Shown: positions 1 through 52,929 of the stretch, in pieces
Position numbering within the stretch: the first letter of the stretch is position 1
Layout of the letters: every line of letters starts with the position of its first letter
NCBI GenBank assembly: GCA_964270895.1
Contig: OZ185441.1
DNA from: Podarcis filfolensis
Taxonomy: Eukaryota
Direction: 5' to 3' (one strand)
DNA length: 64,000 nucleotides
Translations under genes and position numbers: made by a program
The notes under the pieces: generated by a model
Told to the model about the DNA's origin: nothing
The model's input: only the letters and a program-made list of their open reading frames with translations
The model's database searches: none

Positions 1-1384
1 CATGGAGTTGGGTGGTTTGTTCTTTCTGCTCTGGGTCAGATCAATGTGGTCAGCTGTTGTTGGGTTGCATAGTCATTGCCTCTGAAGAATGATAGCTCCC
101 AGTAAGTTTATGTTTTACGAAAAATCATACGCAAGGAAACAGTAATGCTGTGTAAATAATGGGTTGGGTATGTATTGGGAGGCCTTTTGGCTTGGGTGCT
201 TCTTCAAGACGCTAAAGGGAGATCACCTTCAACATTTCCTTGGGGGCCTAGCCTCTGATGTATGTCTGTTTGATATTCATCTATGATGGGGTGGAAATGT
301 AAGACTTATTCCTTTTCCTTATGTGTATGGTGGAATTGAACCTATTCTCTATGTAGCCAAACATGAGTAGGAGTAGGAGTAGGAGTAGCAGAAGAAGAGA
401 CATTAGAACAGGGCTCTGGTGGCTTCTCATTCAGACTAATTTGGTAGGGGGAAATGGCACTTTCTATGGAAGCAATGGCAGCAGCCTTCCAGGGAAGATG
501 CTCTTCTATACAAAAGAGACTTCTGGGAAAGAGCCTGAGCATGGATGCCTTTCAGAAGGAGGCCTACACACAGGACCAGCCACCAGGTGTGCACCCCCAA
601 ATTAGTTTACCTGGAGGCCGCAGCAGGTGGAGGCAAGGATGGGCAGCAGCATGGGGGTGGTGAGGAGAGATGGTGCTCCCTTGCCCTGATGCTGAGAAAT
701 GCTGTTTTCATTTCCCCTCAGTGCTTCTGGGCCCCAATATAGCACCACTATGTTGAAGTGAGGCCCAGAGGCCCTGAGACCATTGGAGAAGGCTGTTGCC
801 ACCTGGTTTGGTGCTTCTGTTCCCAATGAAGGGCCCTATGCTTTTTATTTTAAGAAATCAAGGGGGTTGCGGGTATTGTGCTGGGGCCTATGCTTGACAG
901 AGGACCCAGACTTTGAGCTTTCACTGAAAAAATGTAAGAGCCTAGCCCTTCTAGAAATGAAGTTATCAAGCAAAATGTGTGAGTACCCCTCTAAGTGACT
1001 GAGCCAGCCCAGCTATCCCCACCTTTCAGTGTTTTTAGCAAATGAGTGACGTCAGAGCTGTGGTTGATGAGTAAGTTGTTTGGACACCAAGCTATGGAAT
1101 AACTGGTGTCTTAAAGAGCTGCCATTTCCCTCTTCCATCCAGTGCACTTTTCTGCCCTGCTTGTTTCATTTTCTAGTCCTTGGAATTTCTGTTATTTAGC
1201 CAATCTGTTCTTTCTACACAACAGGATGCATCTTTCCTGTGGTCAGTTGGTCCAAGATCAGATACTCACTATAAGTTATTTTCTGTAAATATTATTACAC
1301 AATAAGTGTGGGTAGACGTTAAAGAATACCCCACCCTATAGCAAGTGCAAAATCTGGAAAGTTTGCAAAGAGGCTTGGGCATTC

Positions 1385-1555
1385 TGTCATACCAACATTT
1401 CTCCAATGAAAATAGGGACGTCCCATTCCATAATGATAATTTTACTATTTATATCCACACATCTTACTGAGTTGCCCCAGCCACTCTGGGCAGCTTCCAA
1501 CATATATAAAAACACAAAAACCTCCCTTCCCTATACAGGACTGCCTTCAGATAGC
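1385..1555. mobile_element. Composite non-autonomous repeat fragment (MITE-like end plus inverted L2 3' tail)
   Basis: Same junction sequence as the reverse complement of ~33240-33430. Its tail part is the reverse complement of the L2 3' end at 35720-35860. Confidence 0.6.
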
Positions 1556-4500
1556 TTGCAGGCCGCAGAATATTGAGGGGGCCCAGCCCCCTGCTTAACT
1601 GGAGGGGCTGAGCTCCCCCCTCCATGTTGTCCCTGATCAGGTGGGAGATAGCAGAGGTGCTACGATACTAAGATAATGTGTTCCCTGTTGAATGTCCAGG
1701 AAAACATAGGCAGCCCCATCATAGAGTTCATATCAAAAGTCAATAAGTGAAAAGATAATGCAATATGTTATTGTATGAAAGTGAATATTAACTAGAGATT
1801 TTGCCTGCAATCCAGAAAAGCTACTGTGTAGCGAGGAGAAGGAGGAGTAATAACAACAACAATAGCCAGGTTCTTTCTCACAATGCCTACAAAGCACACC
1901 GGTCAACACCTACATAGGTAAGCTTTTTCCTGACTCTTCCACCAGCTGCACAAAGCTATTGTGCTTTAGGGTTTCTGAGTCCCAAGGTTTTACGTAAAGT
2001 TTCAGGCTTCAGCTTTCTTTTGGGGATCACAAGTGGCAGGCTGCTTTCAGCTTGACTTAAATGTTGTTGTCTTGCACCCCATCCCCATTCTGTCCAACAG
2101 TCTTCCCCCCTAAAATACCAGGCATAGGCAAACTGCCCAGGAGGCATCAAATTCCCTTCCTTCCCAGGCTCCTCTCATATTCTGATCACTGATAACATTA
2201 GGTAGCACTCGTGTGACACTCATTTTATCTTGTTATTGTGTAACAGCAGAAGGCTGGCAGTGAATATGTTAATTGCTGGGATTGTATGTACATGCTAGTT
2301 TCCTTTGAAATATTCATGAACATTTTCACTCTGAAGAGAGCACGTTGTGTGTCTTGTTTGTAAGATTTCCTCACAGTGGCCCAGTTCTCACCAAGATGGT
2401 TAATCTGTTTCTAGGCTGTACCATTTCAGATTGCAGATGAAACCCACATCTTTGAATGTTCCTGCATACAAAGAATTCAGAGCTCTGTCAAAGCTAGATG
2501 TCAGGAAGATGGATCCTAACTGTGGGGTGGCTGGCATGGAGGAGCATACAGCCATCTTGAGTCCCACCTGCAGTCTGAAGTGGTACAGCCCAGACTCAGG
2601 TGTACAACCTCATTGAGAACTGAGCCAGAAGCACAATTCCTATAATTCCTTGGGAATGATTGCTGCACCAGTTTGAATCTGCAGTGTAGATACATGCTCA
2701 GGGTGCATTCTGCTACACAATTAGATGCTATAGGCAGGAAGTTGTTTTAGGGTACAGTGATAAACTGTGGCTTTATGTGGAGAGGGTGCTGGAAGAAGGA
2801 CCAGGAAGCCCAGAGATTGCAAGAGTAAAGGAGAGGTTGCCAGAAAGCGTCTGGCTCCAGGCCAGTTCTCACCCCTGATAGTTTGTGAATAGCTTTCAGG
2901 GCCATCATTTCAGTGAACTGGTTTTGAGACTTTGTAGCTGGTTAATTTGACATTTAGTGTTTGGCATCTGATATCCGAACATGTTTTAGAGCAATGTGGT
3001 ACCTAACCTTTCGGCTGTGTGGGAAATATATATACACATTCACAACAGTAATTGATATTTTGTATGTAGCTTGCTTTTATTTTATACCTTGAGTTGTAAA
3101 TTGTGCATCAACTTTTAATTAATTCATCATAGGTTTTTAATATGCTGTATTCTGCTTGGTTTGGTTTGTGAGCCACCCAGAAAACTGCTATAGGGCAGCC
3201 TTATAAATGTAATAATGATGATGATGATGATGATTCATCGATAATTGATTAGTGATTTCATCTGTACTTTTAATTTGTTGTTGAGATTTAAATTATTATT
3301 GTTTATTATTACTATTCTGATGCCAAAAGGGTTGCATTGCTGTTATCAATTCATAATTAGGCTTTCGTAACTGCCATACATGTTGCTTTGCTTGAAATGG
3401 TTGACATGTGAACCCTGAGATCCTTGGAAATTGTTTTAGCTACGTTTTCCTACCCAAAATTACATAGTCTGGAAGATTGTTAAGAAAATGACTATGATCA
3501 GAAAAATAGGGCGGGCAAAAGAGACAGCGGAAGAGAGGTGTGTTTGTGTGTCCGTGTGTGTCCTGTCAATAGGCATTAGCAATTCCAGCACAATATGATG
3601 ACCCTAAGCTGATGTACTCTTAAAGCTGCACCAGATCCCACACTTAATCTGTACAGGCAGAACCATTAGTTTCTTTAGTGTTTTTAACAAAAGTTAGAAT
3701 GATGCACAGAGGCTTTTCATTAGTAGGCCATCTGGCTCTAAAATATGCAAAACCAGGGCAGACTCTCACCAAATATAATCAGGGCTCCTTCACATATTAC
3801 TGAAACAATGTGAACATTTAGTGTGTCCATTACATTTTCAGTTGAGGAGGCTGTACTTATTAAAATCATATGTGCTTGAAAATATGTTGCAAGGGGCCAG
3901 GACCTGCCGCGCTTTGTGCACTGAAATAAATGCAAGCGACAGCTTCATATGCTGTGGGGTTTACTGCCAAACACACTGGTCTTCTAGTTTGTAACAAGTA
4001 TCCCCGAATTATAGGAAGTTGAGATTGGAAAGAAGAAATCTCACTTTGAAAATTAAGATGAGCATATATGCAGGCAAAGCAACACAGGAGAATCCAAGAT
4101 CAGAAACTTTATGATTAAATACATCTAATCTAGAGCAATGCAAGAAAGTTACCATATTTGTTTTTCTGTAAAGATAATGGAAGACAAAGAGTGGAAAGAG
4201 CTGGCCAACATCATGCTGTCTAGCCATCTGCCACTGGATGAGATTTGACAGCAATAAACATACACAATCCCTGCCCAGAGACCCCACTCAAGATCTTATG
4301 GTGCCTTTCACAAATGAGTTTAGTGTAGGGGGATGGGAGAATGTAATGAAACTTACTGTATGTTGACCTCCAACATTTAAAATTTCCCTCTTGCTTGCTT
4401 GTCTACAATCTTGAACCTAGAAAATAGTCATTGACTGTCCAAAAAGTCTAAAGCAATCAAACGCAATCACATTTCAGATTTTGAAGTGAGATATCAGTCT

Positions 4501-7290
4501 CCCCACTCTTCTCAAATCCTAATTACAAGGTCTCCCATTTCTATTGTTGAAATGTTTTCCTTTGCACCAAATATTTATTGTGATTTCATTAAAGACAAGG
4601 GTTTAGAATACAGAATTTCTTTTCCATTCCATTAAGTTAAATGGCACAAGTGTGCATTAGGAACTGATTTGAATGCTTCTCATCAAATACTGTTTCCTGT
4701 GAAGTTTAGCACAGTGTCCTGTAGTATAATTCATGTGTGTTAGTTAAACCAAGCCAAGTGGCTTTGCATCTTTCAAAGCCACTTAGCTTGCTATGCAGCG
4801 TTCGTAGCTCTGTGAACCAAGACTGTGTATAACTAGTTAGAAATATCTGTACAGTATGCGTGCTATTTGCGACTAAATGGATTCTGAAAATAAATAGGAT
4901 TGCAAAGTTGAAAGTTATGTGCAGGTGAATTCAAGAGAAGCAAGAGTGTATAAAGACATTGGTATTATCAAGATAAGAACATTCATTATAAAGAATAGTA
5001 TCCTTAAGTTTTTTTAATGTGTATCCTCAGGCATTAGAAAAGGCAGAATCAGTAAGTCAAGGAATGTATTTGATATCGTGATTTTGTGTATTGTAATATA
5101 CAAATACAAACTCTTGAGCTGAAGAAAATTGCTCTTGATGTAGCCTGAGTCCAGAATCTCAAGGTGCTTCCACGCTGCAGGAGTTTTGTGGATGCTGCTA
5201 ATTGTTCTGCGCTCTCTGCCCAGGCACTGTGCCAATCCCTGACCATCACTAGTCCAAGTGGACTAGAAGAGTGAGTTTAGGTTACATAGAAATCATAGCA
5301 AAGAGCGGGAAATTGCATCCCCAAACGACTGCTATATAATAGTTGATTAGTGAGATGATAACTGTGGAAATAGATTTTTACTGCTTTGAAAGGAACCTGT
5401 AAACTGTGAGTCCCTGTGTACATGTGAGTCAAGCTCCTTCATGGAGTCAAAATGGATGTAAAAAGATCCATGGAAATGTATCAGGCAGAAGTAGGAAATG
5501 CAGGTGTTGACGATTCCTATCCTCTCCAGGGCCTGTGACACAGAGAGATATTTAGAATCAGAGAAATTAACATTCCTTGGTTAGTAGAACAAGCAGCAGT
5601 TCCATCATCACTTACTTGTTAAGACTTTCTTGTCTGTTGATGTGAAGAGATCTGAACTTGCTACTTTGAAAAACACTGACCGGGAATTAAGGAAGTTGAG
5701 CATTGCTTGGTCCTGAAGGCTCTATATTGGAGCAACACCTTACTTAGTATGGCAATTCCGTATATAAGGGGACTCCGCCCAATGCAGCATTATGTGACTA
5801 TTGGGAAGTCACAGCTGTGGTGAAAAGGAGGCTTGCTATAAAATAGAAGCTATAAGTTTAATGTTAAAATGAGGTGGACGTCTTTGCCATGGAACATATG
5901 ATGGTGCACATTTTTTATGTCCCCAAATACCCAAAAGATTGTACCTTGGTCAAAACAAACTTTGTCCATGCCAGAGAGCATGTCTCTGCACATAGCAAGC
6001 AGCTCACTCCAGAGGCAGTGGAGCAGCAGTGATTGCCAGTATTCCCAGATGCCTGCGTTTAAAGCCATGGGCCGTGTTTCAAAACCAGGTTTTAGTCACA
6101 AATACTCCTCTGGACAGTGAAGACCAATCTAGCTAACAGAATAACAAATGCAATACGAACAACCTGTGATCATTGCCCTATATTATCTGCACAGTCCTCC
6201 TGGAGAAGAACCAGCACCGTAATGTCTGTTTCATTTCTACCATGAAATCTCACACACGGGAGGTGCCCAGCTTCTCATCCACACATGATGCCACTAGGAG
6301 CAAATCCAGGTGCTTCTAATGCACATAAGACAGAGGACACCACTTTTTCAACAGCAGTGTGCCTCATCTACCTCTTCACTGAAGCCTACCATGACAACAT
6401 TCAGAAGGCATTGTCTACCTTTAGGGCAGAGAAAATACTTCTTTTCACAGATTTCTTTCATCTTTTCCAGGAAGTCCATGAATCTCCTTGACCTGACCCC
6501 TTCCCTAACTATTATCTTAGTTGTCTCCACTATGGAAGCTGTTTGTTGGGAACATCAGGGACCAGGTTCTTGCTCATAAAACTCTTTTTAACCTTGCTCC
6601 TCCTAACCTTTGACTCCAGAGGCTTAAAAATTTCCTTTGTGATGTCATGGTTTATTCTGTTTTGTGCACTGGCTGCAAAACTCCTGAAATTCAGGAAAGG
6701 AAATATGGAGAGACTCTTAGTATACTCCATTTGGAGAACAAAGGCCATAGTGGGAGTGAGCTTTGAAGAGCTCTCCTGCATCGGTTATTGAATGCCATTC
6801 ATTTAAAGGAAATTCAGGCAAACAATCAATGGGTCTTTTAATGTGATCTTATATCCAGCAAATGGCAGTATATCACTTAATTGTGCAGCCACTGGTGTTT
6901 GTTGCATTCTGTTTTTTAAAAAATCTGCAAAATATGCAGTTTGCTGGTTTAGCTTATAACCCCAACCATTCCAAACAAAGAGTGTTCATTATTGAATTTA
7001 AATGCTTGTGACATTCATTAATGAATTCAAAAGCTTGTAATGACATAGGATTTATTGTTCATATAATTATCTTGGGAAATCCAGTCACTGACAGCTGGCA
7101 AATGGGCTCCCAGCTCTTCTTCAACATTTGCACTGGCGCTTTAAGACCTCCCCCACCCCACTGCTGGAGCTGGGGAGGGGGAGAATGGGTGGTCCATTGC
7201 AAACAGCCAGGCGCTTCCTTGATTCCAGGAGCCCTGTATCTGCTTTGATGGACAACAAAGCTCCTCCCCTCTTGATTCCGATACGGACTA

Positions 7291-7310
7291 GGCACCGCCG
7301 CTGTTTTCTG
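7291..7310 (+). promoter_or_regulatory. CSE-like element (CGCT-core Pcdh promoter element, candidate CTCF site)
   Basis: ggcaccgcCGCTgttttctg about 155 bp upstream of the ATG, in a locally CpG-enriched patch. Match to the canonical CTCF core is only partial. Confidence 0.45.
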
Positions 7311-7456
7311 TGGAAGAAAAACAGAGAAAAGATGCAGATGGTGCGCCGCTTTCTCATCCCTTGCGCGATCTAACTCGGGATTCTGTGTTTCCTTGGCTGT
7401 GCTGGAATCAGAGAGGACAGAGGTCCAGCAAAGGAAGACGAAATTTTGGCGACATT

Positions 7457-9907
7457 ATGCTGTCTCTGGAAGAAAGACTACTCCTGCCATGGCAAGTAAG
7501 AGCTTTGCTTTTGGTTTCTGTCTCTCTCCAGAGTGCTGGAGAGATGACCCAGCTCCGTTATTCGATTCCTGAGGAGTTAGCTCCTGGGGCCTTTGTTGGG
7601 GATGTGGCTAAAGACTTGGGTCTAGATGCTGCCCGGGTGGTCTCCCGACAGCTGCAGATCATGGCTGGCTCTGCTGAAAAGTACTTCGAAGCCAAGGTGC
7701 CAAATGGTGTCTTGGTCGTGAAAGAACGGCTGGACCGAGAGCAGCTTTGTGGGCCCAGCTTACACTGCCTGCTCTATCTGGAGCTCCTACTTGCAAACCC
7801 AACAGCCTCCCATCGTGTGGAAGTTGAGCTCTTGGATGTGAATGACAACGACCCAGTTTTTCTTACCAGTCTCACCCATTTGGAGATAGCAGAGTCTGCA
7901 ATGCCAGGAGCCCGCTTCCCCCTGGAAAGTGCTGAAGATTTGGACATTGGCATGAATGCAGTCAGCACCTACCAGCTGAGTCCACGTGGACAATTCAGCC
8001 TCAGTGTTAAGTCACATAAAGGCGGCAGCAAACCTGAGCTGGTGTTAGAGAAGGCGTTAGATAGAGAACAGCAGCAGCACTACCCCCTGGTGCTTACAGC
8101 CCTGGATGGAGGAGTTCCTGCTAAATCCGGGACAGCAAAGATTCTTGTGTCAGTCATAGACGCCAATGACAATCCACCTGTCTTTAACCAGTCGGTGTAC
8201 AAAGTTAGCCTTCTAGAAAATGCCCCAGTGGGGGCCCTTGTGATACATTTACAAGCTACAGACAATGATGAGGGGGCAAATGGGAAAGTTTCCTACTCCT
8301 TCAGCAGCCACACTCCACAGAAAATCCGGAAAATGTTCAGCCTTAATGAGGAGACTGGGGAGATAAGAGTCCTGGGAAGTGTGGATTATGAAGATGACAC
8401 GTTATATGAAATTGATGTGAGGGCCAAAGACCAAGGGTCACCTTCCATGGATGCACACTGCAACATCTTAGTGGAGGTAGTGGATGTGAATGACAATGAG
8501 CCTATCATTAGGTTCACTTCCCTCACCACCACCATACCAGAAGATGCTCCCCCAGGTACCACAGCAGGGCTCCTCAGAGTCAGTGATGCAGATTCTGGGG
8601 GAAATGGAGAAGTACAGCTTCATCTCCCTGCAGATGTCCCCTTCCAGATTGTACCTTCCTTTAAGAACCACTACTCTTTGATCACCAGTGGCCCCCTAGA
8701 TCGGGAGGAAATCTCACAGTACAAAGTTATGATCACAGCTACGGATTCTGGTTCTCCACCTCTCTCCAGTCAAAGAAACTTCCTTGTAAATATATCTGAC
8801 CTGAACGATAACCCACCCCACTTCTCACAGCCTGCATATGAGACCCTCGTAACTGAGAACAATGCTCTGGGGCTGCCAATCATTTCTATATCTGCCTTTG
8901 ACCCTGATCTGGGGCAGAACTCACACCTGTCTTATTCGTTAGTGGAGCATATCATAAATGGAATGCCCATTTCCTCCTATGTCTATGTTATGGAGAACGG
9001 TACTATCTACAGTGGCTGCTCATTTGACTATGAGCAAACCCAGCAACTGGTTTTCCAGATTCAAGCTAAGGATAATGGTTCTCCTCCACTCTGTGCCAAC
9101 GTGACTGTCTCCATCTTCATCATAGACCAGAATGATAATGCTCCTCTCGTTGTATACCCTGTAACCAAGAAGGGGGTCCTAGCCCAGCAGCCAGTCCCTT
9201 TTTCTGCACAAGGAGGTTACCTGGTAACCAAAGTCACAGCTGTGGATGCAGACTCTGGGCAGAATGCATGGGTTTCTTATAAGCTGCAGCAAGCCACAGA
9301 CCCAAGCCTTTTCCAAGTCTCAGCGTTCACAGGAGAGATCCGAACCGTCCGAGCCCTCCTGGAACAAGACGCCCCTTCCCAAGAGTTGGTTGTTGAGATC
9401 TTGGACAATGGGAAGCCACCTCTGTCTGCCACAGCCACTCTGATTCTTCATCTAGAGCATGAGCATGAGTTGGGCACAGCAGACCTCAGAGATTCCAGCA
9501 TGGAACAAGAAGGGCTATCTCACCTGACCTTGCAACTCATTATTGCTCTGATCACCATCTCAGGACTTTCTGCTCTGGCCTTTGTGTTTTTAGCTATGAA
9601 GTGTCTTAACAGATTGAAAGGAAGACACTCAGATGTGGGTTGGACCAGCGACCTGAAGGGTAGGAACTCTATTCCTGTGGGAGGACACTTTGACACGTTC
9701 TCAGTACGCTTGAGGCAGGAGGAAAAAATGGAATTCCCTACAGCCTTCATTGGGGGAGATGTTGTTTCTCCTTTTACCCTCCTAAGGCCTGGCCAGACCC
9801 ACTTTTCGGAAGGGAGGAATTTCAGGATAGCTACACCAGTCACTCAGCAGGATATCAACAGCACAGGCACACTTCTGGCCTGCAGCCTTTCCCAAGAGCC
9901 AAACGAG
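7457..9907 (+). CDS. Protocadherin-gamma variable exon, C-type-like, no clear mammalian 1:1 orthologue (signal peptide, EC1-EC6, TM, variable cytoplasmic domain)
   Basis: Within ORF 7310-9946. ATG at 7457 precedes a signal-peptide-like stretch and QLRYSIPEE. Six cadherin repeats (DRE, DxNDN, DxD motifs), EC1 CX5C (LCGPSLHC), C-type EC3 HC motif (AHCNIL), TM LTLQLIIAL. Phase-0 donor GAG|GTGAGG after 9907. Confidence 0.93.
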
Positions 9908-11437: not shown

Positions 11438-13888
11438 ATGGAGCCACATTTGTCCCGGCAGCCCTCTTTCAAATGGCAAGTACTGGGTTTGTTTTTGCTG
11501 TTCAGCCGGGCGTTGGTTACAGGACAGATCCACTATTCCGTGGTGGAGGAATCGGAGCTGGGCACCGTGGTGGGAAAGGTGGCTCAGGACTTGGGCTTAA
11601 CGGTGGCAGACCTTTCCCGTCGCAGGCTGAGGCTGGGCTCTGAGGAGAGCAAGAGGTACTTTGCAGTTAACTTGGCCAACGGTGCTCTGATAGTGAATGA
11701 AAAGATAGACCGAGAGACCCTGTGTGGAGCAAGCTCGGGGTGCATTTTGCCAGTCCAAGTAGTCATAGAAAATCCCTTGGAGCTCTTTCACCTGGAGGTA
11801 GAGATCCTGGACTTAAATGACAATTCCCCCGGTTTTCTCACTCCCAAGCTTGTGCTGAGGATAGCAGAGTCTGCCGCCACAGGGTCTCGCTTTCCACTGG
11901 AGAGCGCTCATGATGCGGACGTGGGGACCAATGCAGTCAGTGTCTACCGACTCAGCCCCAACCCCCACTTCTCACTTAATGTAAAGAATGTGAACGATGG
12001 CAAGCTTTTACCTGAGCTGGTGCTAGAGCAACCTTTGGACCGAGAGCAACAATCGGAACACCAGCTCATCCTGACTGCCTGTGATGGGGGGGATCCTGTA
12101 CTGTCAGGAACAGCTCTGATCACCATTGTGGTCCTGGATAATAATGATAATGAGCCTGCATTTGACCTTCCTTTGTACAAGATAAGATTTTCGGAGAACA
12201 TCCCTGTAGGCTCTTTGCTTTTCAGACTTAATGCAACTGACCCTGATGCAGGTTCTAATGGGGAAATACAGTATTCCTTTGGAATCCACACACCTGATTC
12301 CATCCAGAAGTTGTTTGGCTTGGATCCCCACACAGGTGAGATCCGTGTCCAAGGAGTTGTGGATTTCGAAGAATCTCATTTTTATGAGCTTCATGTAAGG
12401 GCCAGGGACAAGGGCATTCCTCAAATGGAAGGCCATTGTGTAATCCAAATGGAAGTCGAAGATGAGAACGACCACCCCCCAGAGGTTCTCCTTACCTCTC
12501 TGGTAAACCCCGTGCCAGAAAACACCCCTTTAGAGACAGTGGTAGGGCTTTTCAATGTGCGAGACCAAGATTCAGGTGCCAATGGAAAGGTGAGCTTACA
12601 AATATCACCAAACTTGCCCTTTAAAATTAAATCTTTTGAAAACCACTATTCTTTGATTACCTCTGAGAAGCTGGATAGAGAAACAGTTTCTCGATACACT
12701 ATCAAGTTGACGGCCCAAGATTCAGGGTCTCCACCTCTAACCACAGATGTCACCATCTTGCTGAACATTTCAGATGTTAATGACAATGCCCCGTACTTCT
12801 CTCAGCCCTTCTACAACTCCTTCTTGAAGGAGAACAATCCACCTGGCTCTCTGCTGTGCACTGTGGTGGCCTCTGATCCTGATGAGGGGGACAATTCCCG
12901 GCTCACGTACTCAGTGGCAGGAAGCCCAATTCAAGATGCTCCAGTCTCTTCTTTCATTTACGTCAACCCAGACAATGGGAATGTCTATGCCCAGCACTCC
13001 TTTGACTATGAAATGCTGCAGGTGCTGCAAATCCCCATCATGGTGCATGATGCTGGGTCACCCCAACTGAGCTCCAGTGTCACTGTCTACCTCTTCATAA
13101 TGGATCAGAATGATAACACGCCTGTTGTTTTGCACCCAGTGACTGGTCGGGAACTGTCTGCAATCCAGAGGATCCCTCAATCTGCATCGGCAGGCTATGT
13201 GGTCACCAAAGTCACTGCAGTGGATGCAGACTCTGGCCACAACGCCTGGCTTTCTTACTCCTTGCTTTCCCAGTCTACTGACCCCTCCTTGTTCCGAGTG
13301 GCTCCCTACACTGGGGAAATTTGGACTGTTCGGGAGTTCCAGGAAACAGATCTCCCGGCACAGAAAATCCTTGTACTAGTGAAGGACAATGGAGAACCAC
13401 CTTTGTCTACCACCGTCACCATCGTGGTCTCATTGGAGGATAAAGTAACTGAGGAAAGGCCCCAGTCTCGTGATTTCCTGACTCACCCCAAAGAAAAATC
13501 TGACCTGACCCTCTATCTGATTATTGCGCTGGTGGCAGTTAGCATTGTGTCCCTCGTTACGTTCATAATCTTGTCTGCGAAATGCTTTCGGAATAAAAAA
13601 GCCAGGGGTTCTTCTTGCTGCAGCCTGAGTGGTGCTCCTGCCAGGGATGTTTTCAAACAATCCAGCCCTAAGCTTCAACTGAACTCAGATGGCACATTGA
13701 AATACATGGAGGTCACACTCAGGCCCACAGACTCCCAGAGCCAGTGCTATAGAACCAGCTATTCTCCCGGCTCGGACAGAAGTGATTTCACCTTTATGCG
13801 GCCTGTGGATTATCCTCAACCAAGTACTCTGACGAGAGACTTTGACACTTTCTTATCTCGTACTGATACACTGAACCATCCCAGGCAG
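11438..13888 (+). CDS. PCDHGC5: Protocadherin gamma-C5 variable exon
   Basis: KWQVL signal, YSVVEESE, LCGASSGC, LLSQSTDPSLF, the EC4 one-residue deletion (LPFKIKSFENHYSL) and cytoplasmic DGTLKYMEVTLRPTDSQSQCYRT match human gamma-C5 as I recall it. Phase-0 donor CAG|GTGAGG after 13888. Confidence 0.9.
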
Positions 13889-14706
13889 GTGAGGTGGAAT
13901 TTTGTCCTTTTTCTCCTTTCCCACATGAATCTGGTGTCTCCAGTAACACTTTGAAACTTGACTGAGGGCTGATTCACCAGTTATCAGAATAGGGTGGGGC
14001 CTCCTTCTTCATAACTTAACCCTGCACCACATAGTCATAACGCCTTGGGAAAGAGAGAGCAGGAGAGTGGGGAAAATTACACTGATTTCTTCCCACAAAC
14101 TGCTGCCTTTTAATGAGAGAAAGTGGGTAGGGGAGCAGGGGCTGGAACTAGGATGTGAATAATAAGAAAATGATAATTTAAAATCATCCTTCAAATGCTG
14201 CCTGTCACAAAGTTAGCTTTTTGTATTTTTGCAACTGCTAAGTTCCCTCCGCCCCCGTACAATTAGATTTCTTTCTCTAAGAAAAACCAATCACTCCCTT
14301 GAGTTTTTACATTGAAAGGGTGGAGTCTAAGGCTTCTGAAATACCGGTAAATAAAGCTAGATATTAATTTGGTAGCCTAGAAATAACTAAAAGAGATTGA
14401 TCTGGAAGCTTAGGATGGGGTAAGAGGAACTATTGTTTCCTAGAATTCATTGAATTGTCTTTGTTCATAAAAATGACAAATCAGCTGTTCTGTTGTGGAT
14501 GTAATACGTGAGGAGTCAGTGTGCTTTTAGAGCAAACATTTCTTTGCAGCGTATGCTTCTAAGAGTCCTATAGCTAGCACAGAAGCCAAAACCAGACAAG
14601 ATTTTGGGCTTTGTTTTCCATTGTCTGCCGTTTAGCCTGGTGTCTCTAGGTTAAAAACAGCAGGTTACGCGGTCCTTTTTCACACAGTAGCAACTTCCAG
14701 ACTTGG

Positions 14707-14777
14707 ATTGGTGCGTGTGTTGCTGTCCTGGGAAGGAGGCTGCTGATTGGATAAATAGAAAGGCAGTCTCAGCCAAT
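14707..14777. promoter_or_regulatory. CCAAT-box cluster, promoter of the third variable exon
   Basis: ATTGG at 14707 and 14746, CCAAT at 14773, ATAAATA at 14751; 240-310 bp upstream of ATG 15017. Confidence 0.5.
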
Positions 14778-15016
14778 GAGCAGGAGGTTAGCATTGAAGA
14801 TCTGCGGTGTGTACCACTCCCCTCCTGTGTCAATCTCTCTCAAACCAAAACAATGAATGAGAGAGGTAAACACTGACCACAGACCCTTTTCCTCTCATAT
14901 ATTTCATATTTCTTCAAGATAGGTGGTGAATCCTCCAGAGGTTTAAAGAGATACTGCCTGCTATATTTAGCTCCTGTTTTGCAGTTTTAGAGCTTCCTGC
15001 TGTGGATTTCAGAAAG

Positions 15017-17455
15017 ATGCTCAGAACAGAAAACTCTGCCTGGCGTTTGGGACTCGTGCATGCCTTTGCCTTCTGTCTGTTTCTGAGTGACTGTTTTGCA
15101 CAGATCCGTTACTCTGTCCCAGAGGAACTCACTCGAGGAGCCTTTGTAGGAAATGTTGCTAAGGACTTAGGAATGGATGTGACAAAGCTTGCAGCTGCCA
15201 ATCTGCAGGTGCTTTCTGATTCTGACTCCCAGTATTTCTCTGTGAATGTGAACACTGGAATCATAATAGTCAATGACAGAATAGACAGGGAGCAGCTCTG
15301 TGGGCAGAACCTGCGCTGTTTCTTGCATCTCAAACTTGCTATTGAAAACCCAGTGGAGTTCTATCGCATCGAAGTGGAGATTCTGGATATCAACGACAAT
15401 GCGCCTGTGTTCTCAAGTAGCACAATATCTCTGCAGATCTATGAACTGGCTGCACTGGGTGCCCGTTTCCCCATCCCACACGCACAGGATTCAGATGTAG
15501 GAACTAACACTTTACAGACCTACCACCTCAGCGCCAATGAGAACTTCAACCTCAACGTGAAGGCACGTACAGATGGCACCAAATTCCCAGAGCTAGTACT
15601 GGAGAAACCCCTGGACAGGGAGCACATCGCTGTCCACCACTTGGTCCTGACAGCTGAAGATGGGGGCATATCCCCCAAATCTAGCGCTATTCGAATTGCT
15701 GTCCACATTCTGGATGCCAATGATAATCATCCGGTTTTTGACAAACCTACTTATTATACCCGCTTAGTAGAAAACTCTCCTCCAGGAACTCTGGTGATTA
15801 AGCTGAATGCAACAGACTTGGACGAAGGGCCGAATGGAGAGGTGCAGTATTCCCTCAGCAGCCATAACTCAGAAGCCTTGCGCAGGATATTTGCTATCAA
15901 TGAGACTACGGGAGAGATCCGTGTCCAAGGGAGCCTGGATTTTGAAGAGGCTAATGTCTATGAGATCGAAGTGGAGGCTAAGGACATGGGCTCCCCTACT
16001 ATGGAGGAACACTGCAGTGTTATGGTAGAAGTCACAGATGTCAACGACAATGCACCTGAAGTTATTCTCACCTCTTTCTCCAGCTCTATGGGTGAAGATG
16101 CGCCTCCTGGCACTGTGGTTGCTGTGATACATGTCAAGGATAGAGACTCTGGGGATCAAGGGAAAGTCCGGTGTGATCTGCCCAGAAACCTTCCTTTCAA
16201 ACTTCGGAAAGACTTTGAGCACCAGTATTCCTTGCTCACAAGTGAGCAACTAGATCGTGAGAGCACTCCGCAATACAACGTCACCATCTATGCCTTTGAC
16301 TTGGGGAATCCACCTCTTTCTGAGCACACCTCTTTCTCCATAACTCTGGCAGATGTCAATGACAACCCACCTCATTTTGACAGGCCATTTTATGAAGCCG
16401 TCATAGAAGAGAACAATCCAGTGGGGGTGGTACTGCTTAGAGTTTCTGCAACAGATTCTGATAAGGACCAGAACTCCCGTTTGTCTTATTCTGTTTTGGC
16501 GAGCCCAGGGCAAGGATTGATTGAGGACCTCACCTCTTATGTCTCCATCAACCCAACAAATGGAGATGTCTTTGCAGAAAGCCCTTTTGATTACGAGCAC
16601 ACGAATCATTTTCAGTTCCTGGTGGAGGCGTGTGATGGTGGCTCCCCTCCTCTCTGCAACAGAATCATGGTGCACATCTACCTCCTAGATCAGAATGACA
16701 ATGCACCCTGGATTCGATTCCCCTTTACTGGGAAAGATTCTGTTGTACAGTTCAGAATTCCACGATCTACTGCAGCCAATGCCTTAATCACAAAAATTAT
16801 GGCAGTGGACTTGGACTCTGGGCGAAATGCTTGGCTCTCTTACCATGTAGAGCAAGCCACAGACCCTGGTATTTTCAGCATGGCCCTCCGTAGCGGGGAG
16901 GTGAGGACTACACGAGCATTACAGGACATAGACAATCCTACCCAGGACCTTGTCCTGGTTGTCAAAGACTCAGGTGATCCTTCCTTGTCCACCTCAGTCA
17001 CTGTGATGGTGCTCTTGGAGGAGAGCAGCCCTGAAACCTTTCTGGGGTTAACAGCTCACTCAGTGGAAACTGAGGGACCTCCCACATTGACTGTGTACCT
17101 TATCATCTCCTTGGCAGCAATTTCCACCATCTCGCTGATGGCTTTGGTGGCCTTGGGAGTTCGATGCCTCCGCCGTGATTCACGTGCAACATCTACCATC
17201 TTTGGATGCTGTGGAAGCAAAGCTGGTGGGCTTCAAGATGCTTCAGATCACGTGATGGGACATTGCCATTATCAGCTGAGCCCTGGAGATGCCATGATAG
17301 GAGTGCAAGTGGCCACTTCTGGACCCCCTGCCCGTGGATACAGATCCTGCTTTTCTCCTGTCTCAGACATTAGCGAATTTGTATTCATGAAACCTAATCT
17401 GACACTTAGGACAGCCTCTTGCAGCAATCTCACTGAACCCAGCTTCTTTGGCAAG
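15017..17455 (+). CDS. Protocadherin-gamma variable exon, C-type-like, downstream of C5
   Basis: Within ORF 15002-17521; first ATG at 15017. QIRYSVPEE, six EC repeats, LCGQNLRC, EHCSVM, TM LTVYLIISL. Phase-0 donor AAG|GTGAGA after 17455. Confidence 0.93.
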
Positions 17456-17929
17456 GTGAGAATTTTCCATGTAGTGTCCCTATTTTGTTCCAGCCATGGC
17501 ACCACCTTTCTTTTCTTTTGAGTTTCCCTGCACCTAGGAGAAGTGCCTGGGGTGGGGGTGAGGAATCAACGCGTGGTCTCAAGCATAGGCTGTGATACAT
17601 TGCACCTATCTGCTCCAAAGCTTTGTGTGCCTAATTTTCCTCTCTTTCTTTATGAGCGGGGGGGGGGAGGGGGAGGGGATTGAAGTGAAGAGGTTGCAGG
17701 AGGGTAGAGTAGCCCCCTCCCCCCTCCTGGAGTTACAGCTGCCGTCAGCAGCTCGCCCTGTCTGCGTTCTGCACCTTCGGTTCCTGCTTTTCCACCAAAG
17801 GGGCATCAAGGGAGCTCTTCTGGCCAATGGCTCCCTTGGGTCAGCCCTCCAAATCTCTCTGCTGCGCTGGGAAAGGAATGGGAAGCGCAGGGAGGGAAAA
17901 CTGGTGGCAAGAGAGATTGGGGAGGGGGG

Positions 17930-18830
17930 AGCAGCAGGGTGTGTGTGCGTTTCGGGGAAGGGGCTTCTCTGCTGCTGCCGCCGCCGCCGCCGCCGCCGAG
18001 GAGGGAATTGCCGCTTGTCTGTATCCATTTCACAGCCCCTTTTCTCTGCTGCTCCTTTTGCCAATGAGCTGCTGCTGATCCGAGCGCTTTAAAATCCCCC
18101 CGCTCCCCCCTCCCGCCTCTCCAGCTGCAGCCCGCGCCTTTCCGCTGCACAGCACCTCTCAGGTCACCCCGGAGCCTCCAGGAGCAGACCTGGGGGGCGG
18201 GGCGGGGGGCACCGGACTGCGGCGGGGTCCGGAGGCAGCAGCGGCCACCCCCGGGCTGGATACCTGGACCAGAGGCAGCCGCTGGAGACGGCCATCCTTG
18301 CGCGCAAAGGAGCCAGGCATGGGCGGCGGGCAGAGCTGGTCGTGGCAGCTGCTGGCGCTGGTGGCTGCCGCCTTGTCCCTGCCAGGGCTCATCCCCGCGC
18401 AGATTCGCTACTCCATCCCAGAGGACCGGGACCCAGGCTCTTCCGTGGGGAACGTGGCGAAGGACCTAGGCGTGGACGTGCGGAGCTTGTCCGCTCGCCG
18501 CCTGCAGCTGGTCAGCGACGGGATGCGCCACTACTTCCATGTCAACCTCGCCGACGGCATGTTGCTGGTCCACGAGAGGCTGGACCGCGAAGCTCTGTGC
18601 AGCTCCAGCCCCACGTGCTCCTTCCCTCTCCAGCTGGTGCTGGAGAACCCCCTGCAGCTCCACCGGGTGGAGGTGGAGATCCTGGACGTGAACGACAACG
18701 CCCCCAAGTTCCCGAAGGACAGGGTTTCCTTGGAAATCACCGAGGTGGCCAACCCGGGCACCCGCTTGCGCCTGGAAGCCGCCGAAGACCCGGACACGGG
18801 CTCCAACTCCATTGCCACCTATGAGCTTAG
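17930..18830. promoter_or_regulatory. CpG island over promoter and EC1 of the last variable exon
   Basis: Very high GC and CpG density, GC boxes, CCAAT at 18061, (GCC)7 at 17977-17997. Confidence 0.8.
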
Positions 18831-20754
18831 CCCAAGCGAACATTTTGCCTTGAGCATTAACGTCAGGGGGGACGGGGTCAAAATGCCCGAAATTGTGCTG
18901 GAGAAGCTTCTAGACAGGGAAAAAGCCGCTGTCCATCACTTAGTCCTGACAGCTCTGGATAGTGGGAATCCTGTTCAGTCTGGGACTGCCCAGGTGACAG
19001 TCCACGTCCTGGATGCAAATGACAACCCCCCTGTGTGTGACCCGCCAGTGTCCAAAGTTTATTTGGAGGAAAATGTCCAGGTGGGGACTGTCGTAACTAA
19101 GCTCAATGTTACGGACTTAGATGAAGGTCCCAATGGAGAGATGGAGTATTTCCTCAAAGCCAGCAACAGCGCACCTCTGAAGCTCCTTGACTTATTTAGC
19201 TTGGATCCCCAGACAGGGGAGATCAGGACCAAAGCTTTGCTGGACTACGAAGAAGCCAATGCTTACGAGATAGCTATCTACATAAAAGACAAGGGGTCCC
19301 CTGCCATGGAGGGTCACTGCAACATCAGAGTGGAACTTGTTGATGTCAATGACAACCGCCCAGAGATTATGCTGACCTCCCTCTCTAGCCCAGTGCAAGA
19401 AGATGCACCCACAGGAACAGTCATTGCCCTGATCCAAGCAAAGGACAACGACTCTGAGGAAAATGGGCAAGTCCACTTGGAGATTACCAGGCACATCCCG
19501 TTCAAACTGGTGTCTTCCTTTAAGGGACATTATTCACTGGTGACCAATGGGCCCCTGGACCGAGAGAAGGCTGCTGGATATAATATCACAATTAAAGCAA
19601 CAGATTCTGGAATGCCTCAAAAATCCACCCACAAAAACATATTTATTCAAGTCTCAGATGTCAATGACAATGCACCCACTTTCTCCATCCCTTCATACAC
19701 TGCCCATGTGGAGGAAAATACTTCCCCTGGGACTCTAGTTTTTTCTCTGTCAGCCTCAGATCCGGATGCAGGTGTCAACTCCAAGCTGTCTTATTCCATT
19801 GTGGACAATGGAAATCATGGCTTACCCATTTCGACCTATTTCCACATCAACCAAGAAAATGGCAGCATTTACACATCCAGGATGCTTGACTATGAGCAAG
19901 AGAAAGTCTTTCAAGTTGCAGTGGAGGTGAAGGATTCGGGTTTCCCACCCCTGAGCAGCACAGCCACTCTTCACTTGTTTGTTGTGGACCAGAACGACAA
20001 CGCCCCGGTGATTGTGCACCCGCAAGTCTCCAAGGGCTCTGCCTTTCACCAGCCAGTTCTGCTCCCAGTGGAACCTGGATTCCTGGTGACCAAAGTGGTG
20101 GCTGTGGATGCTGACAGTGGCCACAATGCTTGGCTGTCCTATAGTTTGCTTCAGGACGCCAATGAAGCCACCCCGTTCAAAGTGGAACGCCACTCAGGAG
20201 AGATCCGGGCTGTTCGGGCATTGAGGGAGCCTGGGGTGTCCCACAGGTTGGTGATAGAAGTAAGAGACAATGGAGTGCCGTCTCTCTCAGCCTCACTGGT
20301 TCTTGTGATTTCCTCAGAGGATAATGCTGTGCAGGACTTTTCCAAGTCCTTGGACCTTCTCCCCAAATCACCTTCCAGAGCCCCCAGCCTAACTCTCTAC
20401 CTTATCATCTCTCTTGTGGCCATCTCTCTGGTCTCTTGTGTAATGTTGGTTATTGTGGGGGCCAGGTGCTTCAGATCTGGCCTCTGTGTCCCCAGCTGGT
20501 TCATGTCACACTGCTGTAGTAAGAGGACAGACAGGAAATCCACCATAAATTTCACTGGGCGCCCACATCCCGAAGGCTTTATCAGATACCTTGAAGTGGG
20601 CGGAGCTGGAGCTCAGCACTACAAGTCTTGTCTCTCTCCAATGTCTGAACAGGGCGAATTCTTTTTTGTTAAACCTTTCAGTCATTCCACTACAGCAGAA
20701 AGCATGCTTGCCTTTGAGCAGGCAGGCAGTGTTTTGCAGAGTCCCTCTGATGGG
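18319..20754 (+). CDS. Protocadherin-gamma variable exon, C-type-like, last before the constant region
   Basis: Within ORF 18298-20838; ATG at 18319. QIRYSIPED, six EC repeats, LCSSSPTC, GHCNIR, TM LTLYLIISL. Phase-0 donor GGG|GTAAGA after 20754. Confidence 0.93.
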
Positions 20755-24281: not shown

Positions 24282-24340
24282 CAAGCACAACCTAACACAG
24301 ACTGGCGTTTCTCTCAGGCCCAGAGACCAGGAACCAGTGG
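24282..24340 (+). CDS. PCDHG: PCDHG constant exon 1 (59 bp)
   Basis: ttctcttgcag| acceptor. Encodes [19 protein letters not shown](G). Donor GG|GTGAGT. Length and sequence match the mammalian constant exon 1. Confidence 0.97.
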
Positions 24341-34077: not shown

Positions 34078-34166
34078 GTCTCAGAATGGGGATGAGAATG
34101 GGACTTGGCCAAACAACCAGTTTGATACCGAAATGCTACAAGCCATGATTCTTGCATCAGCAAATG
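34078..34166 (+). CDS. PCDHG: PCDHG constant exon 2 (89 bp)
   Basis: Long pyrimidine tract and tccttag| acceptor. Encodes (G)[29 protein letters not shown](E). Donor G|GTCAGT. Phases fit exons 1 and 3. Confidence 0.97.
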
Positions 34167-43551: not shown

Positions 43552-43808
43552 AAGCCGCTGCCGCCGCCGCTGCAAATCCTGATGGAAATTCTACTCTGGG
43601 AGGAGGAGCAACAGCAGCAGGCACAATGGGCCTCAGCACCAGGTATGGCCCCCAGTTCACCCTGCAGCACGTCCCTGACTACAGACAGAACGTGTACATC
43701 CCTGGCAGCACAGCCACGCTCTCCAATTCTGCAGCCAAGCGGGATGGGAAACCTGCAGCCTCCGGAGGTGGAAACAAGAAGAAGTCAGGGAAGAAGGAGA
43801 AGAAGTAA
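43552..43808 (+). CDS. PCDHG: PCDHG constant exon 3, coding part
   Basis: Pyrimidine tract and ggtgtag| acceptor. Encodes (E)[52 protein letters not shown]...[11 protein letters not shown], ending in the Lys-rich C-terminus typical of Pcdh-gamma. Confidence 0.97.
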
Positions 43809-49700: not shown

Positions 49701-50339
49701 TAACAACGAAAATCAGCACAAATAATTAAAAATACATAGAAACGCTTACTGCTAAGTGCTGCCTTTACTCAGCGGAAGCCCATCCCGTTTTGCTGCCTGA
49801 GGCAAAATCGGGAAAGTGACCCCCTGTGCAGTGTGCGCCCACCCCTTGCCACCCCTGCTGAAGCCTTGCTTCCAGGGGTCACGCGGTGCGGTGGCAGGTT
49901 CCAAGTTCTGGTGACATCTTGCACCACTCTTGAAAGGTCTTGCCGGAACCTGGAAGCCACTGCCATTTGTCCCCACTTCTTTGGCGTCAGTGGCTGCGCC
50001 CCTTGGATTTTGCTGCCCAAGGTAGCTGTCTGAGTCTGCCCCACAGACCGCCAGGTCTTTACTCCTAGTTTGGTCCTTTATCAAGCTAGTCCTAGAGAAG
50101 CGGGGGAGGGGAACTGCCTATCAGCACCATCTTAATTCCTAAAATGTCAGACATGCACCAGGTGCTAGCTTCCCTGCAGGCCTACAGCCTCCCTCCACCA
50201 TTTGCTCAAACTATTCCCCCCACCCTCCAAAAAACCCCAGCAGGCTAAGCTCCGGGGCGGTTGGTTCCCTTCGCTCCTGCCTAGCGCCTTTCAGCAGAAG
50301 GCCTTTGCTTAGGACAGTCCAAAAAGGGGCAGGGAGCAT

Positions 50340-51700
50340 AACGGGGAGGGGGCGGAAGAGAAATCCCCGTCCCTCGCCCCTTCCAGGAATGCCATTTGCC
50401 GACAGCAACGAAGGAAGCAAAACGAAAACAGGTAAGATTAATGGTGGGGGCGGAGTGAGGAGCACAAGAAGCCAGAGGTGCCAACTTGAATAAAATATTG
50501 GGGGGAGGCAAGCCCCGCCCCGCACAATTCCTCGCTCTCCCCTTGTCCTCGAGGCTCAGCCCCCAGAAGCCGCGGGAAGGCTCGCTGGGTGCGGAGCGAG
50601 GGCACCCCAGGGTGCCGGGTCGGGACAGAGGAAAGCCGTCGGGCATCTCGCGTCGCCATGAGTCCCTTGCAGCCTCCTCGCGAGGAGAGGGGCTGGGCAG
50701 CGGCTGCGAGGAGGTGCGCGAGAGAGGGGGGCCCTGGAATACAAGGCTCTTCTTCCAGGGCATCGGGCAGGCGGCGTGCGCCGCGGTCTGCGCCTTGGGC
50801 GCCGAAGGAGGTGTCTGGGTGCGCGGAGGAGGGGCGGGCGCGGGAGAGGTCCAGGCAGCCGGGAGAAGGAAGAGGGAGGACGCGCGCACGCACGCGCACT
50901 CTTCTTCTTCTTCTTGCAAGCCCCTGTTGCCATAGTGACGAGGTCTTCCTCGGGCTCTGGCGCCGATGCGGGAGTCGGACGCCTCGAGGGGCGCGCAGGC
51001 TGAGCGCTGCCTGCTGGAGCCCGGAGCAGGAGGCGACCCGGCGGGGGGGGGGGGGCGAAACGCCGCTTCCCTCCCCCCGCCCCGAGAATTGACCCAAACA
51101 GGCGCCTCTTCGCCACAGCCGCCGTCGGCGCGGCTTTTTCTCCCCGCCAGCGCACAGCGTTGTGATCTTGGCTGTTCTATAATAAATGTGCCGTTTCCGA
51201 AGGGCGACTTGTCTTATCTGCTTATGAACATTAAATAATATTGGGGTTCGAGCGAGGGAAACTGATGTGAGAGGGCGGTTGTGCAACCAGCTCCTGCGCC
51301 TTGAGCAGCCCCTCGACAGGGCAGACATTCCGCAGAAGCATTTCCTCTCCATGCCAAGACGGGCTTTTCCTGCCGAATTTCTCCCCTTTCACGTACAGGT
51401 TCCGTTAGAACGTGGCGCATTTTCCCATCCCACCCAAAAAGGGAATTCCGCAGCCAGATCAAAGGTTTAATCTCTCTCTCCTTTTTTTAAACAGACCAAC
51501 ACAGACCAGATCCAAAACGGTAACAGAAGAGCAGCTCTTTGTCCGTGAGAGCGCGGCTGGCTGGCAAGTCGGGGGCTGCAGCGCCCGGGGAGGGAGGGGG
51601 GCAGAGAGAAGGCGCGCACCTCCCTCGGGCAAGCGGGCGGGGATGAGCATCTCTGAATGGATGCTCTGTGCCGGGAAAGGCGGGGGGGGGAACCCTTTGT
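50340..51700. promoter_or_regulatory. CpG island / probable promoter of an unidentified gene
   Basis: Dense CpG, several GGGCGG boxes, ETS-like CGGAAG near 50352, X-box at 50926, GCGC-rich NRF1-like tract near 50881-50899, strong + strand donor CAG|GTAAGA after 50431. Confidence 0.75.
50926..50939. promoter_or_regulatory. RFX X-box
   Basis: GTTGCCATAGTGAC, close to the palindromic X-box GTTGCCATGGCAAC, inside the CpG island. Confidence 0.55.
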
Positions 51701-52929
51701 GTGGGCGGCAGATTAGATCAAGCGCCACGTGCGCTGGGAGCCCCATATTTCCCCGATGGGATCATCCCACAATCTGCCCCTCGTGACCATCCGCGGATGC
51801 AGCTGCCTGGTGTCTCCATGCAGACAAATGGTGGGCATTTCCGGAGCTAAACGCCCCACCCCCGCTGAAAAAAGCTTTTGTTCCAGTTTCGGTCCTCGAT
51901 TCTGTCTGCCTTCTTAATTGGGGCGAGGGGGGGCATCCCATCCAGCAGAGTTGGCTCATCCCGGCTGACAGTGGCTCCTCCTTTGCCCCCAAACTGTTAG
52001 CCCAGTCGCTGAAGAAGTAGCCAAGAAGCGCGCGGTGCGCCTTTCTTCGTGCCCGCTCCCAATCCACTGTCAAACACAGATTGTGGCTAAGTATAGTAAC
52101 CACAAATGTACATCCTGGGTTGATCGGCATGGCTTTTGGGGAACGCTTTTTGAAGAGCCCTGTGCAGTCAATCACCCTTTGCATTCACTCATTTCTGTGG
52201 ACACTCATTTCTGTGGAAGAATTCAGTGCATCACACTAGCCTGGTGCGCTGGAAGGAAGGGAAGATCAGTAGCTTCAGATTGTAGAAGCAGACAAAAAAC
52301 GGAGTGATTCCTTCCTTTACTTTAGTGAAAAGGATTGGAGCTGATCTGCAATTACTAAAGGAGGGAGAGAGAGAGATTAGAGGAGAATGATTTGTTCCTC
52401 AAGGCCAAGGAAGTTAATCAGCTCCAGTTGCAGTGTATGGGGGAGGGGCTGGGTCTTTCTCTGAAGCACCGGCTGGAAGAAGAGATGGGGGGGGAGTGGC
52501 CTTTCTCCCCAGGCCCTCTGCCCCAGCCTTGGCTGGATGGAGTTAGCTGCTCTGAGTTAGGGCAAGGATCACAGGACAATTAATGAGCTCTGCTGCTGGC
52601 TGCTAATCAGAAACAGATCAAGGCCTCACACCTGACCCCAGCCAGGGAGAGAGCAGAGTGGAGCTCAGCCAGCACAAAGCTGCAAAAAGGAGTGCGTACT
52701 CTTTCCTGGAGAGTATCCTGTAGCAGGAGGGAAGCAGCGGAAATCTGGCTCTGACTCAGGACAGTTGGCCAGGAAGGTTCTCTCTGTGACACATTGTCCT
52801 GCAAGTTGCTTCTGCTCATAGGGATCCTGTGACAGATCCCGGATGGCCCAAATGGTACCTTGTATTTAGCCATGTAACAATGAACCAAAGTCTACAAAGA
52901 GAGACACAGAAAAGGCAAACAGTGAAATA

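Follow-up and report, generated by a model that had tools for sequence, protein, structure and literature searches.

Two variable exons between gamma-C5 and the constant region of the Podarcis filfolensis protocadherin gamma locus as probable orthologues of gamma-c6 and gamma-c7

Introduction

The 64,000-nucleotide stretch of contig OZ185441.1 (assembly GCA_964270895.1) from the lacertid lizard Podarcis filfolensis, hereafter the window, contains two long variable exons of the clustered protocadherin gamma (Pcdh-gamma) locus, designated V3 and V4, which lie between the gamma-C5 exon and the constant region. This raises the question of which genes the two exons represent: additional C-type isoforms that mammals lack, as a preliminary description of the window had proposed, or else duplicates of C5, displaced counterparts of mammalian C3 or C4, or relics. 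The evidence presented here makes it very probable that the genes in question are Pcdh-gamma-c6 and Pcdh-gamma-c7, both of C type, with V3 and V4 as their lacertid orthologues.

The existence, the position and the missing human orthologues of both genes are already known, having been published for Anolis carolinensis in 2009 (Jiang et al. 2009, PLoS One 4:e7614, PMC2764143), which bears out the caution of the preliminary description that extra 3' gamma genes might be described for the anole. Five gamma c-type genes (c3-c7) were reported in that lizard, c3 and c5 being orthologous to human genes and c4, c6 and c7 being without a direct human orthologue (PMC2764143). Anole c7 was found orthologous to coelacanth Lm-gamma-24, likewise the last variable exon, and no interspecies orthologue of c6 was found; the authors favoured a model of differential loss of ancient c-type genes and verified the variable and constant splice sites by reverse transcription PCR (RT-PCR) on brain cDNA (PMC2764143). 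Our searches of the later literature on gamma-c6 and gamma-c7 found nothing beyond this study and a Xenopus paper.

Results

Identity of the two exons

Both exons are located on the + strand and code for proteins with extracellular cadherin (EC) repeats:

15017..17455, + strand: V3, probable gamma-c6 variable exon; 813 codons, phase-0 donor AAG/gtgaga after 17455; signal peptide, EC1-EC6, transmembrane stretch and variable cytoplasmic domain.
18319..20754, + strand: V4, probable gamma-c7, last variable exon before the constant region; 812 codons, phase-0 donor GGG/gtaaga after 20754.

In a word-based protein search V3 was 89% identical to the Anolis protein D0IQ79/DAA06629.1, titled by NCBI 'TPA_inf: protocadherin gamma c6 isoform', and V4 was 91% identical to Anolis DAA06630.1, 'TPA_inf: protocadherin gamma c7 isoform', which falls within the 90% cluster of V4. 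The same cluster includes Zootoca XP_034959262.1, a model of 946 amino acids (aa) made up of V4 and the constant region; the corresponding model for V3 (99.9% identical) is the 947-aa Podarcis muralis XP_077789600.1. Protein identities of V3 and V4 were 99.9% and 99.8% to the Podarcis muralis models, and 99.1-99.3% to those of Zootoca vivipara. The Anolis locus contains four variable exons in the same order as the window, with identities of 81%, 88%, 89% and 91% to V1-V4. V3, the first exon after C5, is nearest to anole gamma-c6 and monophyletic with that anole gene; V4, the last variable exon, is nearest to anole gamma-c7 and likewise monophyletic with its anole counterpart.

Exon anatomy of the locus

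The window, whose sequence is free of N, is the 3' end of the lacertid Pcdh-gamma cluster. Four long stop-free open reading frames (ORFs) start on the + strand at 7310, 11438, 15002 and 18298 (first ATGs at 7457, 11438, 15017 and 18319), giving the variable exon order c4-like, C5, c6, c7, followed by three constant exons; the order in Anolis is identical. In addition to V3 and V4 the coding parts are:

7457..9907, + strand: V1, gamma c4-like variable exon; ORF with in-frame donor GAG/gtgagg after 9907, 81% identical to the Anolis exon upstream of C5 (L003:1406).
11438..13888, + strand: V2, gamma-C5 variable exon; donor CAG/gtgagg after 13888.
24282..24340, + strand: gamma constant exon 1, 59 nt, preceded by a polypyrimidine tract and a ...ttgcag acceptor.
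34078..34166, + strand: gamma constant exon 2, 89 nt.
43552..43808, + strand: coding part of gamma constant exon 3, with the stop codon TAA at 43806-43808.

Each of V1-V4 codes for a signal peptide, one Cadherin_2 domain (EC1) plus five Cadherin domains, one transmembrane stretch and a Cadherin_C_2 domain by Pfam, with five DxNDNxP calcium-site linkers; the single hydrophobic transmembrane stretch begins at residue 695 in both V3 and V4. The phase-0 donors of V3 and V4 both fit the acceptor of constant exon 1 at 24282, and the protein encoded by constant exons 2 and 3 is a 100% match to the constant part of a Zootoca RefSeq protein. In their domain plan, their position upstream of three constant exons and their fitting donor phase, V3 and V4 therefore have the features of gamma variable exons. 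The description of the pair as full-length, stop-free exons with signal peptide, six EC repeats, transmembrane stretch and phase-0 donors proved exact to the base, Pfam domains and donors being in agreement. A chance origin of the two exons is ruled out because 812-813 stop-free codons carry this domain content.

Farther downstream, a 304-aa ORF on the - strand at 50438-51352 is of low complexity, rich in Arg, Pro and Ser, and lies inside a CpG island (GC 0.61, 50001-52000). This ORF is most likely not a protein; the CpG island could serve as a promoter or regulatory element located beyond the gamma cluster on its downstream side.

The exon at 11438 as gamma-C5

The position assigned to V3 and V4 depends on the exon at 11438. 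The American black bear has C5 as its last variable exon, and V2 was 63% identical to it, the other lizard-bear pairs reaching 41-49%. Against 4ZPN (mouse gamma-C5 EC1-3) V2 scored 465 bits, and other EC1-3 structures gave at most 319 bits; the last variable exon of the bear scored 654 bits against 4ZPN, which confirms that chain as gamma-C5. The phylogenetic placement of V2 in a C5 clade with 100/100 support (see below) agrees with the earlier naming of this exon.

C-type signature in EC3

In a small alignment of the EC3 loop (25 sequences), C-types displayed a loop two residues longer, whose last two residues, ahead of the EC3-EC4 linker, are His-Cys; the sole exception was Rhinatrema c7 (Leu-Cys). 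The three gamma-A sequences had no Cys at this site and the four gamma-B-like sequences had Q/E/Y-Cys without the insertion. The His-Cys signature that had been attributed to both V3 and V4 is present in the two exons and holds across this alignment.

Chimeric database models

In a first tree built from all matches, two or three extra c7-like paralogues seemed to be present in birds, turtles and Varanus. Segment-wise BLAST led us to reject them as chimeric models. About 78 bird entries named 'PCDGM protein, partial' turned out to be chimeras of neighbouring gamma C-type exons, and further cases were found among Ensembl/UniRef models of turtles, snakes and Varanus (the P0049 and P0200 groups, P0085, P0106, P0044, P0091 and P0034). 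They consist of the 5' part of one C-type exon (C5, c6 or c4-like) joined to the 3' part of the next, the types including C5/c7 and c6/c7. Since such models mimic extra paralogues in a naive tree, the tree was rebuilt without them.

Phylogeny of the C-type exons

The resulting maximum likelihood (ML) tree comprised 38 rows and 723 columns (IQ-TREE with LG+C20 and posterior mean site frequencies; rooted on bear gamma-A). The C-type clade (33 rows) split from gamma-A and gamma-B with 99/95 support, and five clades obtained 100/100. The C3 clade contained bear and Rhea, and the C5 clade bear, Rhea, V2, Anolis and one Rhinatrema exon. V3 grouped with c6 sequences of Anolis, Heteronotia, Varanus, Gavialis, Carettochelys, three birds and two Pleurodeles genes, and V4 with c7 sequences of Anolis, Pogona, Varanus, Gekko, two turtles, Crocodylus, three birds and the last variable exon of Rhinatrema; the c6 and c7 clades were each separate from those of C3 and C5. 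The fifth clade was formed by V1 and its Anolis orthologue.

Identity between V3 and V4 was 45%, and each was 44% identical to V2; with respect to bear C3, C4 and C5 the values were 43-46% (44% and 45-46% to bear C5). The two exons could be rejected as 1:1 orthologues of mammalian gamma-C3 or gamma-C5, both falling outside those clades. With this divergence and an amphibian member in each clade, the proposal that the extra isoforms are ancient and very divergent stands, and both c6 and c7 predate the amphibian/amniote split.

Selection and promoter regions

Ratios of nonsynonymous to synonymous substitution rates (dN/dS) were calculated by the Nei-Gojobori method. The window compared with Anolis gave values of 0.11 for c6, 0.07 for c7, 0.11 for C5 and 0.16 for c4-like, and compared with Rhea 0.125 for c6 and 0.126 for c7. 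The dN/dS of 0.07-0.11 against Anolis shows purifying selection on V3 and V4, as strong as on C5.

Conserved blocks were found upstream of both exons:

14705..14866, + strand: conserved putative promoter block upstream of gamma-c6 (400 bp upstream alignment), with two ATTGG, one CCAAT and CAATGAATGAGAGAG.
18060..18100, + strand: CCAAT box and adjacent block upstream of gamma-c7 in a GC-rich (0.69) putative promoter region, GCCAATGAGCTGCTGCTGATC being identical in Anolis.

The ATTGG, CCAAT and CAATGAATGAGAGAG motifs of the first block are invariant in the window, Anolis and Rhea, the three boxes being of NF-Y type, and the region upstream of c7 is conserved with Anolis. The core of the conserved sequence element (CSE), GAGCGCCGCTGT, a mammal-derived motif used with no lizard positive control, was not matched, with up to two mismatches allowed, anywhere in the 400 bp preceding V2, V3 and V4. 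A near match was present at bear C3 also. Two partial matches to this core (two mismatches each) are located in the window at 7290-7345, at -164 and -116 from the V1 ATG.

Distribution among vertebrate loci

The preliminary description had held that mammals lack these isoforms, and in the two therians examined C5 runs straight to the constant region. In the bear, C5 ends near 79750 and constant exon 1 lies at 82475; in the tammar wallaby the respective positions are 9724 (approximately) and 14004. Searches by tblastn with V3, V4 and the other C-types found nothing in these gaps of 2.7 kb and 4.3 kb; the corresponding lizard interval measures 10.4 kb and contains V3 and V4. Among the best 120 matches of V3 or of V4 there were no mammalian proteins above about 50% identity. 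By these searches c6 and c7 are missing from bear and wallaby. The exons were intact in every sauropsid sampled.

The Rhea pennata locus presents C3, C5, c6 and c7 only, in that order. Between C3 and C5 of this bird (2956-7007) there is no c4-like exon, the 4 kb gap having not been searched for a relic; the c4-like gene may have been lost in birds. In Rhinatrema (341-5400 of the locus) two tandem C5-like variable exons are followed by a c7-like exon as the last variable exon, and no intact c6-like exon lies among them.

Expression, proposed mechanism and a putative isoform without transmembrane segment

RefSeq models in Podarcis, Zootoca, Anolis and Pogona link each exon to the constant region at donors corresponding exactly to 17455 and 20754. 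By analogy with the family, each of c6 and c7 would be transcribed from its own promoter and its variable exon would be cis-spliced to the three shared constant exons. The product would cross the membrane once and carry six cadherin repeats, and the neuronal repertoire of cell-surface recognition isoforms, which includes C3, c4-like and C5, would in this way grow by two. As homophilic recognition units, c6 and c7 would be expected to bind in trans by EC1-EC4, each isoform specifically, and to dimerise in cis by EC6.

An additional splice site may exist within V4:

20257..20265 (cut 20259/20260), + strand: in-frame internal donor-like site GAA/GTAAGA in EC6 of gamma-c7, codon 647; the site of RefSeq 780-781 aa models.

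The Anolis counterpart of this site is GAG/GTGAGG. RefSeq models of 780-781 aa that skip the transmembrane segment are annotated in six squamate species (two of Podarcis, two of Anolis, Pogona and Elgaria), and a Zootoca variant of 765 aa uses codon 631 (20211/20212) as donor. It is conceivable, if rather unlikely in our judgement, that gamma-c7 also makes a conserved isoform of this kind by joining the EC6 donor at 20259/20260 to constant exon 1. Such a product would begin with the signal peptide, run from EC1 through most of EC6 and finish with the constant tail, without a transmembrane helix. A separate gamma-c7 model of 237 aa starts at Met709, inside the predicted transmembrane stretch (from residue 695).

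Discussion

Alternative origins of V3 and V4

NCBI names all of these exons 'gamma-C5-like', as would be expected if the two exons were recent squamate-specific duplicates of C5. Those names are assigned automatically, however, and identities of only 44% to V2 and 44-46% to bear C5, together with the occurrence of birds, crocodilians, turtles and an amphibian in both clades and the exclusion of C5 from them, speak against a recent duplication; with the ML tree refuting it, we give this origin practically no chance. Nor do V3 and V4 look like untranscribed or decaying relics that stay open by chance, an explanation that we regard as very improbable. The lizard, Anolis and Rhea are separated by roughly 170-280 million years (estimate), and over this time dN/dS has been kept at 0.07-0.13. 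The exons are intact in all the sauropsids sampled, conserved blocks lie upstream of both, and splice sites of the anole genes were confirmed by RT-PCR (PMC2764143).

The relation to mammalian gamma-C4 is harder to settle, and one of the two genes could be the true, highly diverged orthologue of C4, moved relative to C5, so that only one of the pair would be 'extra'. In the tree, bear C4 was a long branch (0.67) in a polytomy with the c4-like, C5 and c7 clades, c6 being sister to the group of C4, c4-like, C5 and c7 with support of only 88/84. Used as a query, bear C4 retrieved therian C4 only (marsupial 89%), the next matches (turtle C5) being at most 51% identical; this absence of a closer non-mammalian partner, together with the long branch, leaves room for a displaced orthologue, and approximately unbiased (AU) tests rejected neither the union of bear C4 with the c6 clade (p 0.25, log-likelihood difference 7.1) nor that with the c7 clade (p 0.084, difference 5.1). 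Uniting bear C4 with c4-like cost least, however (p 0.37, difference 2.2), and it is the c4-like exon that holds the place of C4 between C3 and C5. Bit scores against the C4 EC1-4 structure were lower for c6 (442) and c7 (435) than for V1 (460) and C5 (467), and whole-exon identities to bear C4 (45% for V3, 43-44% for V4) were at background level. We therefore think it improbable that c6 or c7 is C4, and the c4-like exon is slightly favoured as its partner on position and likelihood. Of the possibility that V3 and V4 are mammalian C3 and C4 in a pure rearrangement, which the preliminary description had set against its own proposal, the C3 part is excluded by the tree and the C4 part persists to the extent given by these AU tests. 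Whichever gene pairs with C4, two or more of the sauropsid trio c4-like, c6 and c7 appear to be missing from mammals.

Several points weigh against the assignment of V3 and V4 to gamma-c6 and gamma-c7, or against what is concluded from it. The tree was built without alpha-C1, alpha-C2, coelacanth and shark genes, which were covered by bit scores against PDB structures and by the published tree. All Logan-derived homologues read through the donor into the intron, that is, they are unspliced sequences and not cDNA, and give no splice evidence. The mechanism is founded on family knowledge from mammals, on the anole RT-PCR (PMC2764143) and on RefSeq models; for c6 and c7, both homophilic binding and the mode of expression, constitutive or stochastic, are likewise argued by analogy. 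As to the promoters, the CSE core is a mammal-only consensus derived from the alternate promoters of the bear.

Significance

The orthology of V3 and V4 with gamma-c6 and gamma-c7 implies that mammals, with three gamma C-type isoforms, have a reduced set compared with the larger one of the tetrapod ancestor, and that sauropsids retain c6 and c7 under strong constraint. Mammalian C-type isoforms have non-redundant roles, C4 in neuronal survival being one example, and for this reason comparative neurobiology may fairly ask what the two isoforms lost by mammals do. The window contributes one further species together with modest extensions, namely the tracing of c6 as far back as salamanders and the lack of any relic in the therians. 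The additions over the 2009 description are small: the lacertid copies; c6 orthologues in birds, crocodilians, turtles and a salamander; relic-free therians; the warning about chimeric models; and the putative c7 isoform without transmembrane segment, as annotated.

Comparison with known systems

Coelacanth Lm-gamma-24 (and gamma-20 to gamma-23) is known here by its published description, from which its likeness to c7 as the last variable exon is taken (PMC2764143). With mammalian C3, C4 and C5, the genes c6 and c7 share the domain plan, an EC3 loop that is two residues longer and carries His-Cys, the use of the same constant exons and the grouping against gamma-A and gamma-B, but they are only 43-46% identical to them and form clades apart from C3 and C5. 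The mammalian C4 and C5 promoters lack the CSE/CTCF element and their expression is constitutive and biallelic; the c6 and c7 promoters, with no match to the mammal-type CSE core, may resemble them. The closest likeness is that to gamma-c6 and gamma-c7 of Anolis, which are also the final two variable exons after C5, with identical architecture, in the same clades and in a collinear locus. The difference is that the present copies are lacertid, and that orthologues of c6 are now seen in birds, a crocodilian, a turtle and the salamander Pleurodeles.

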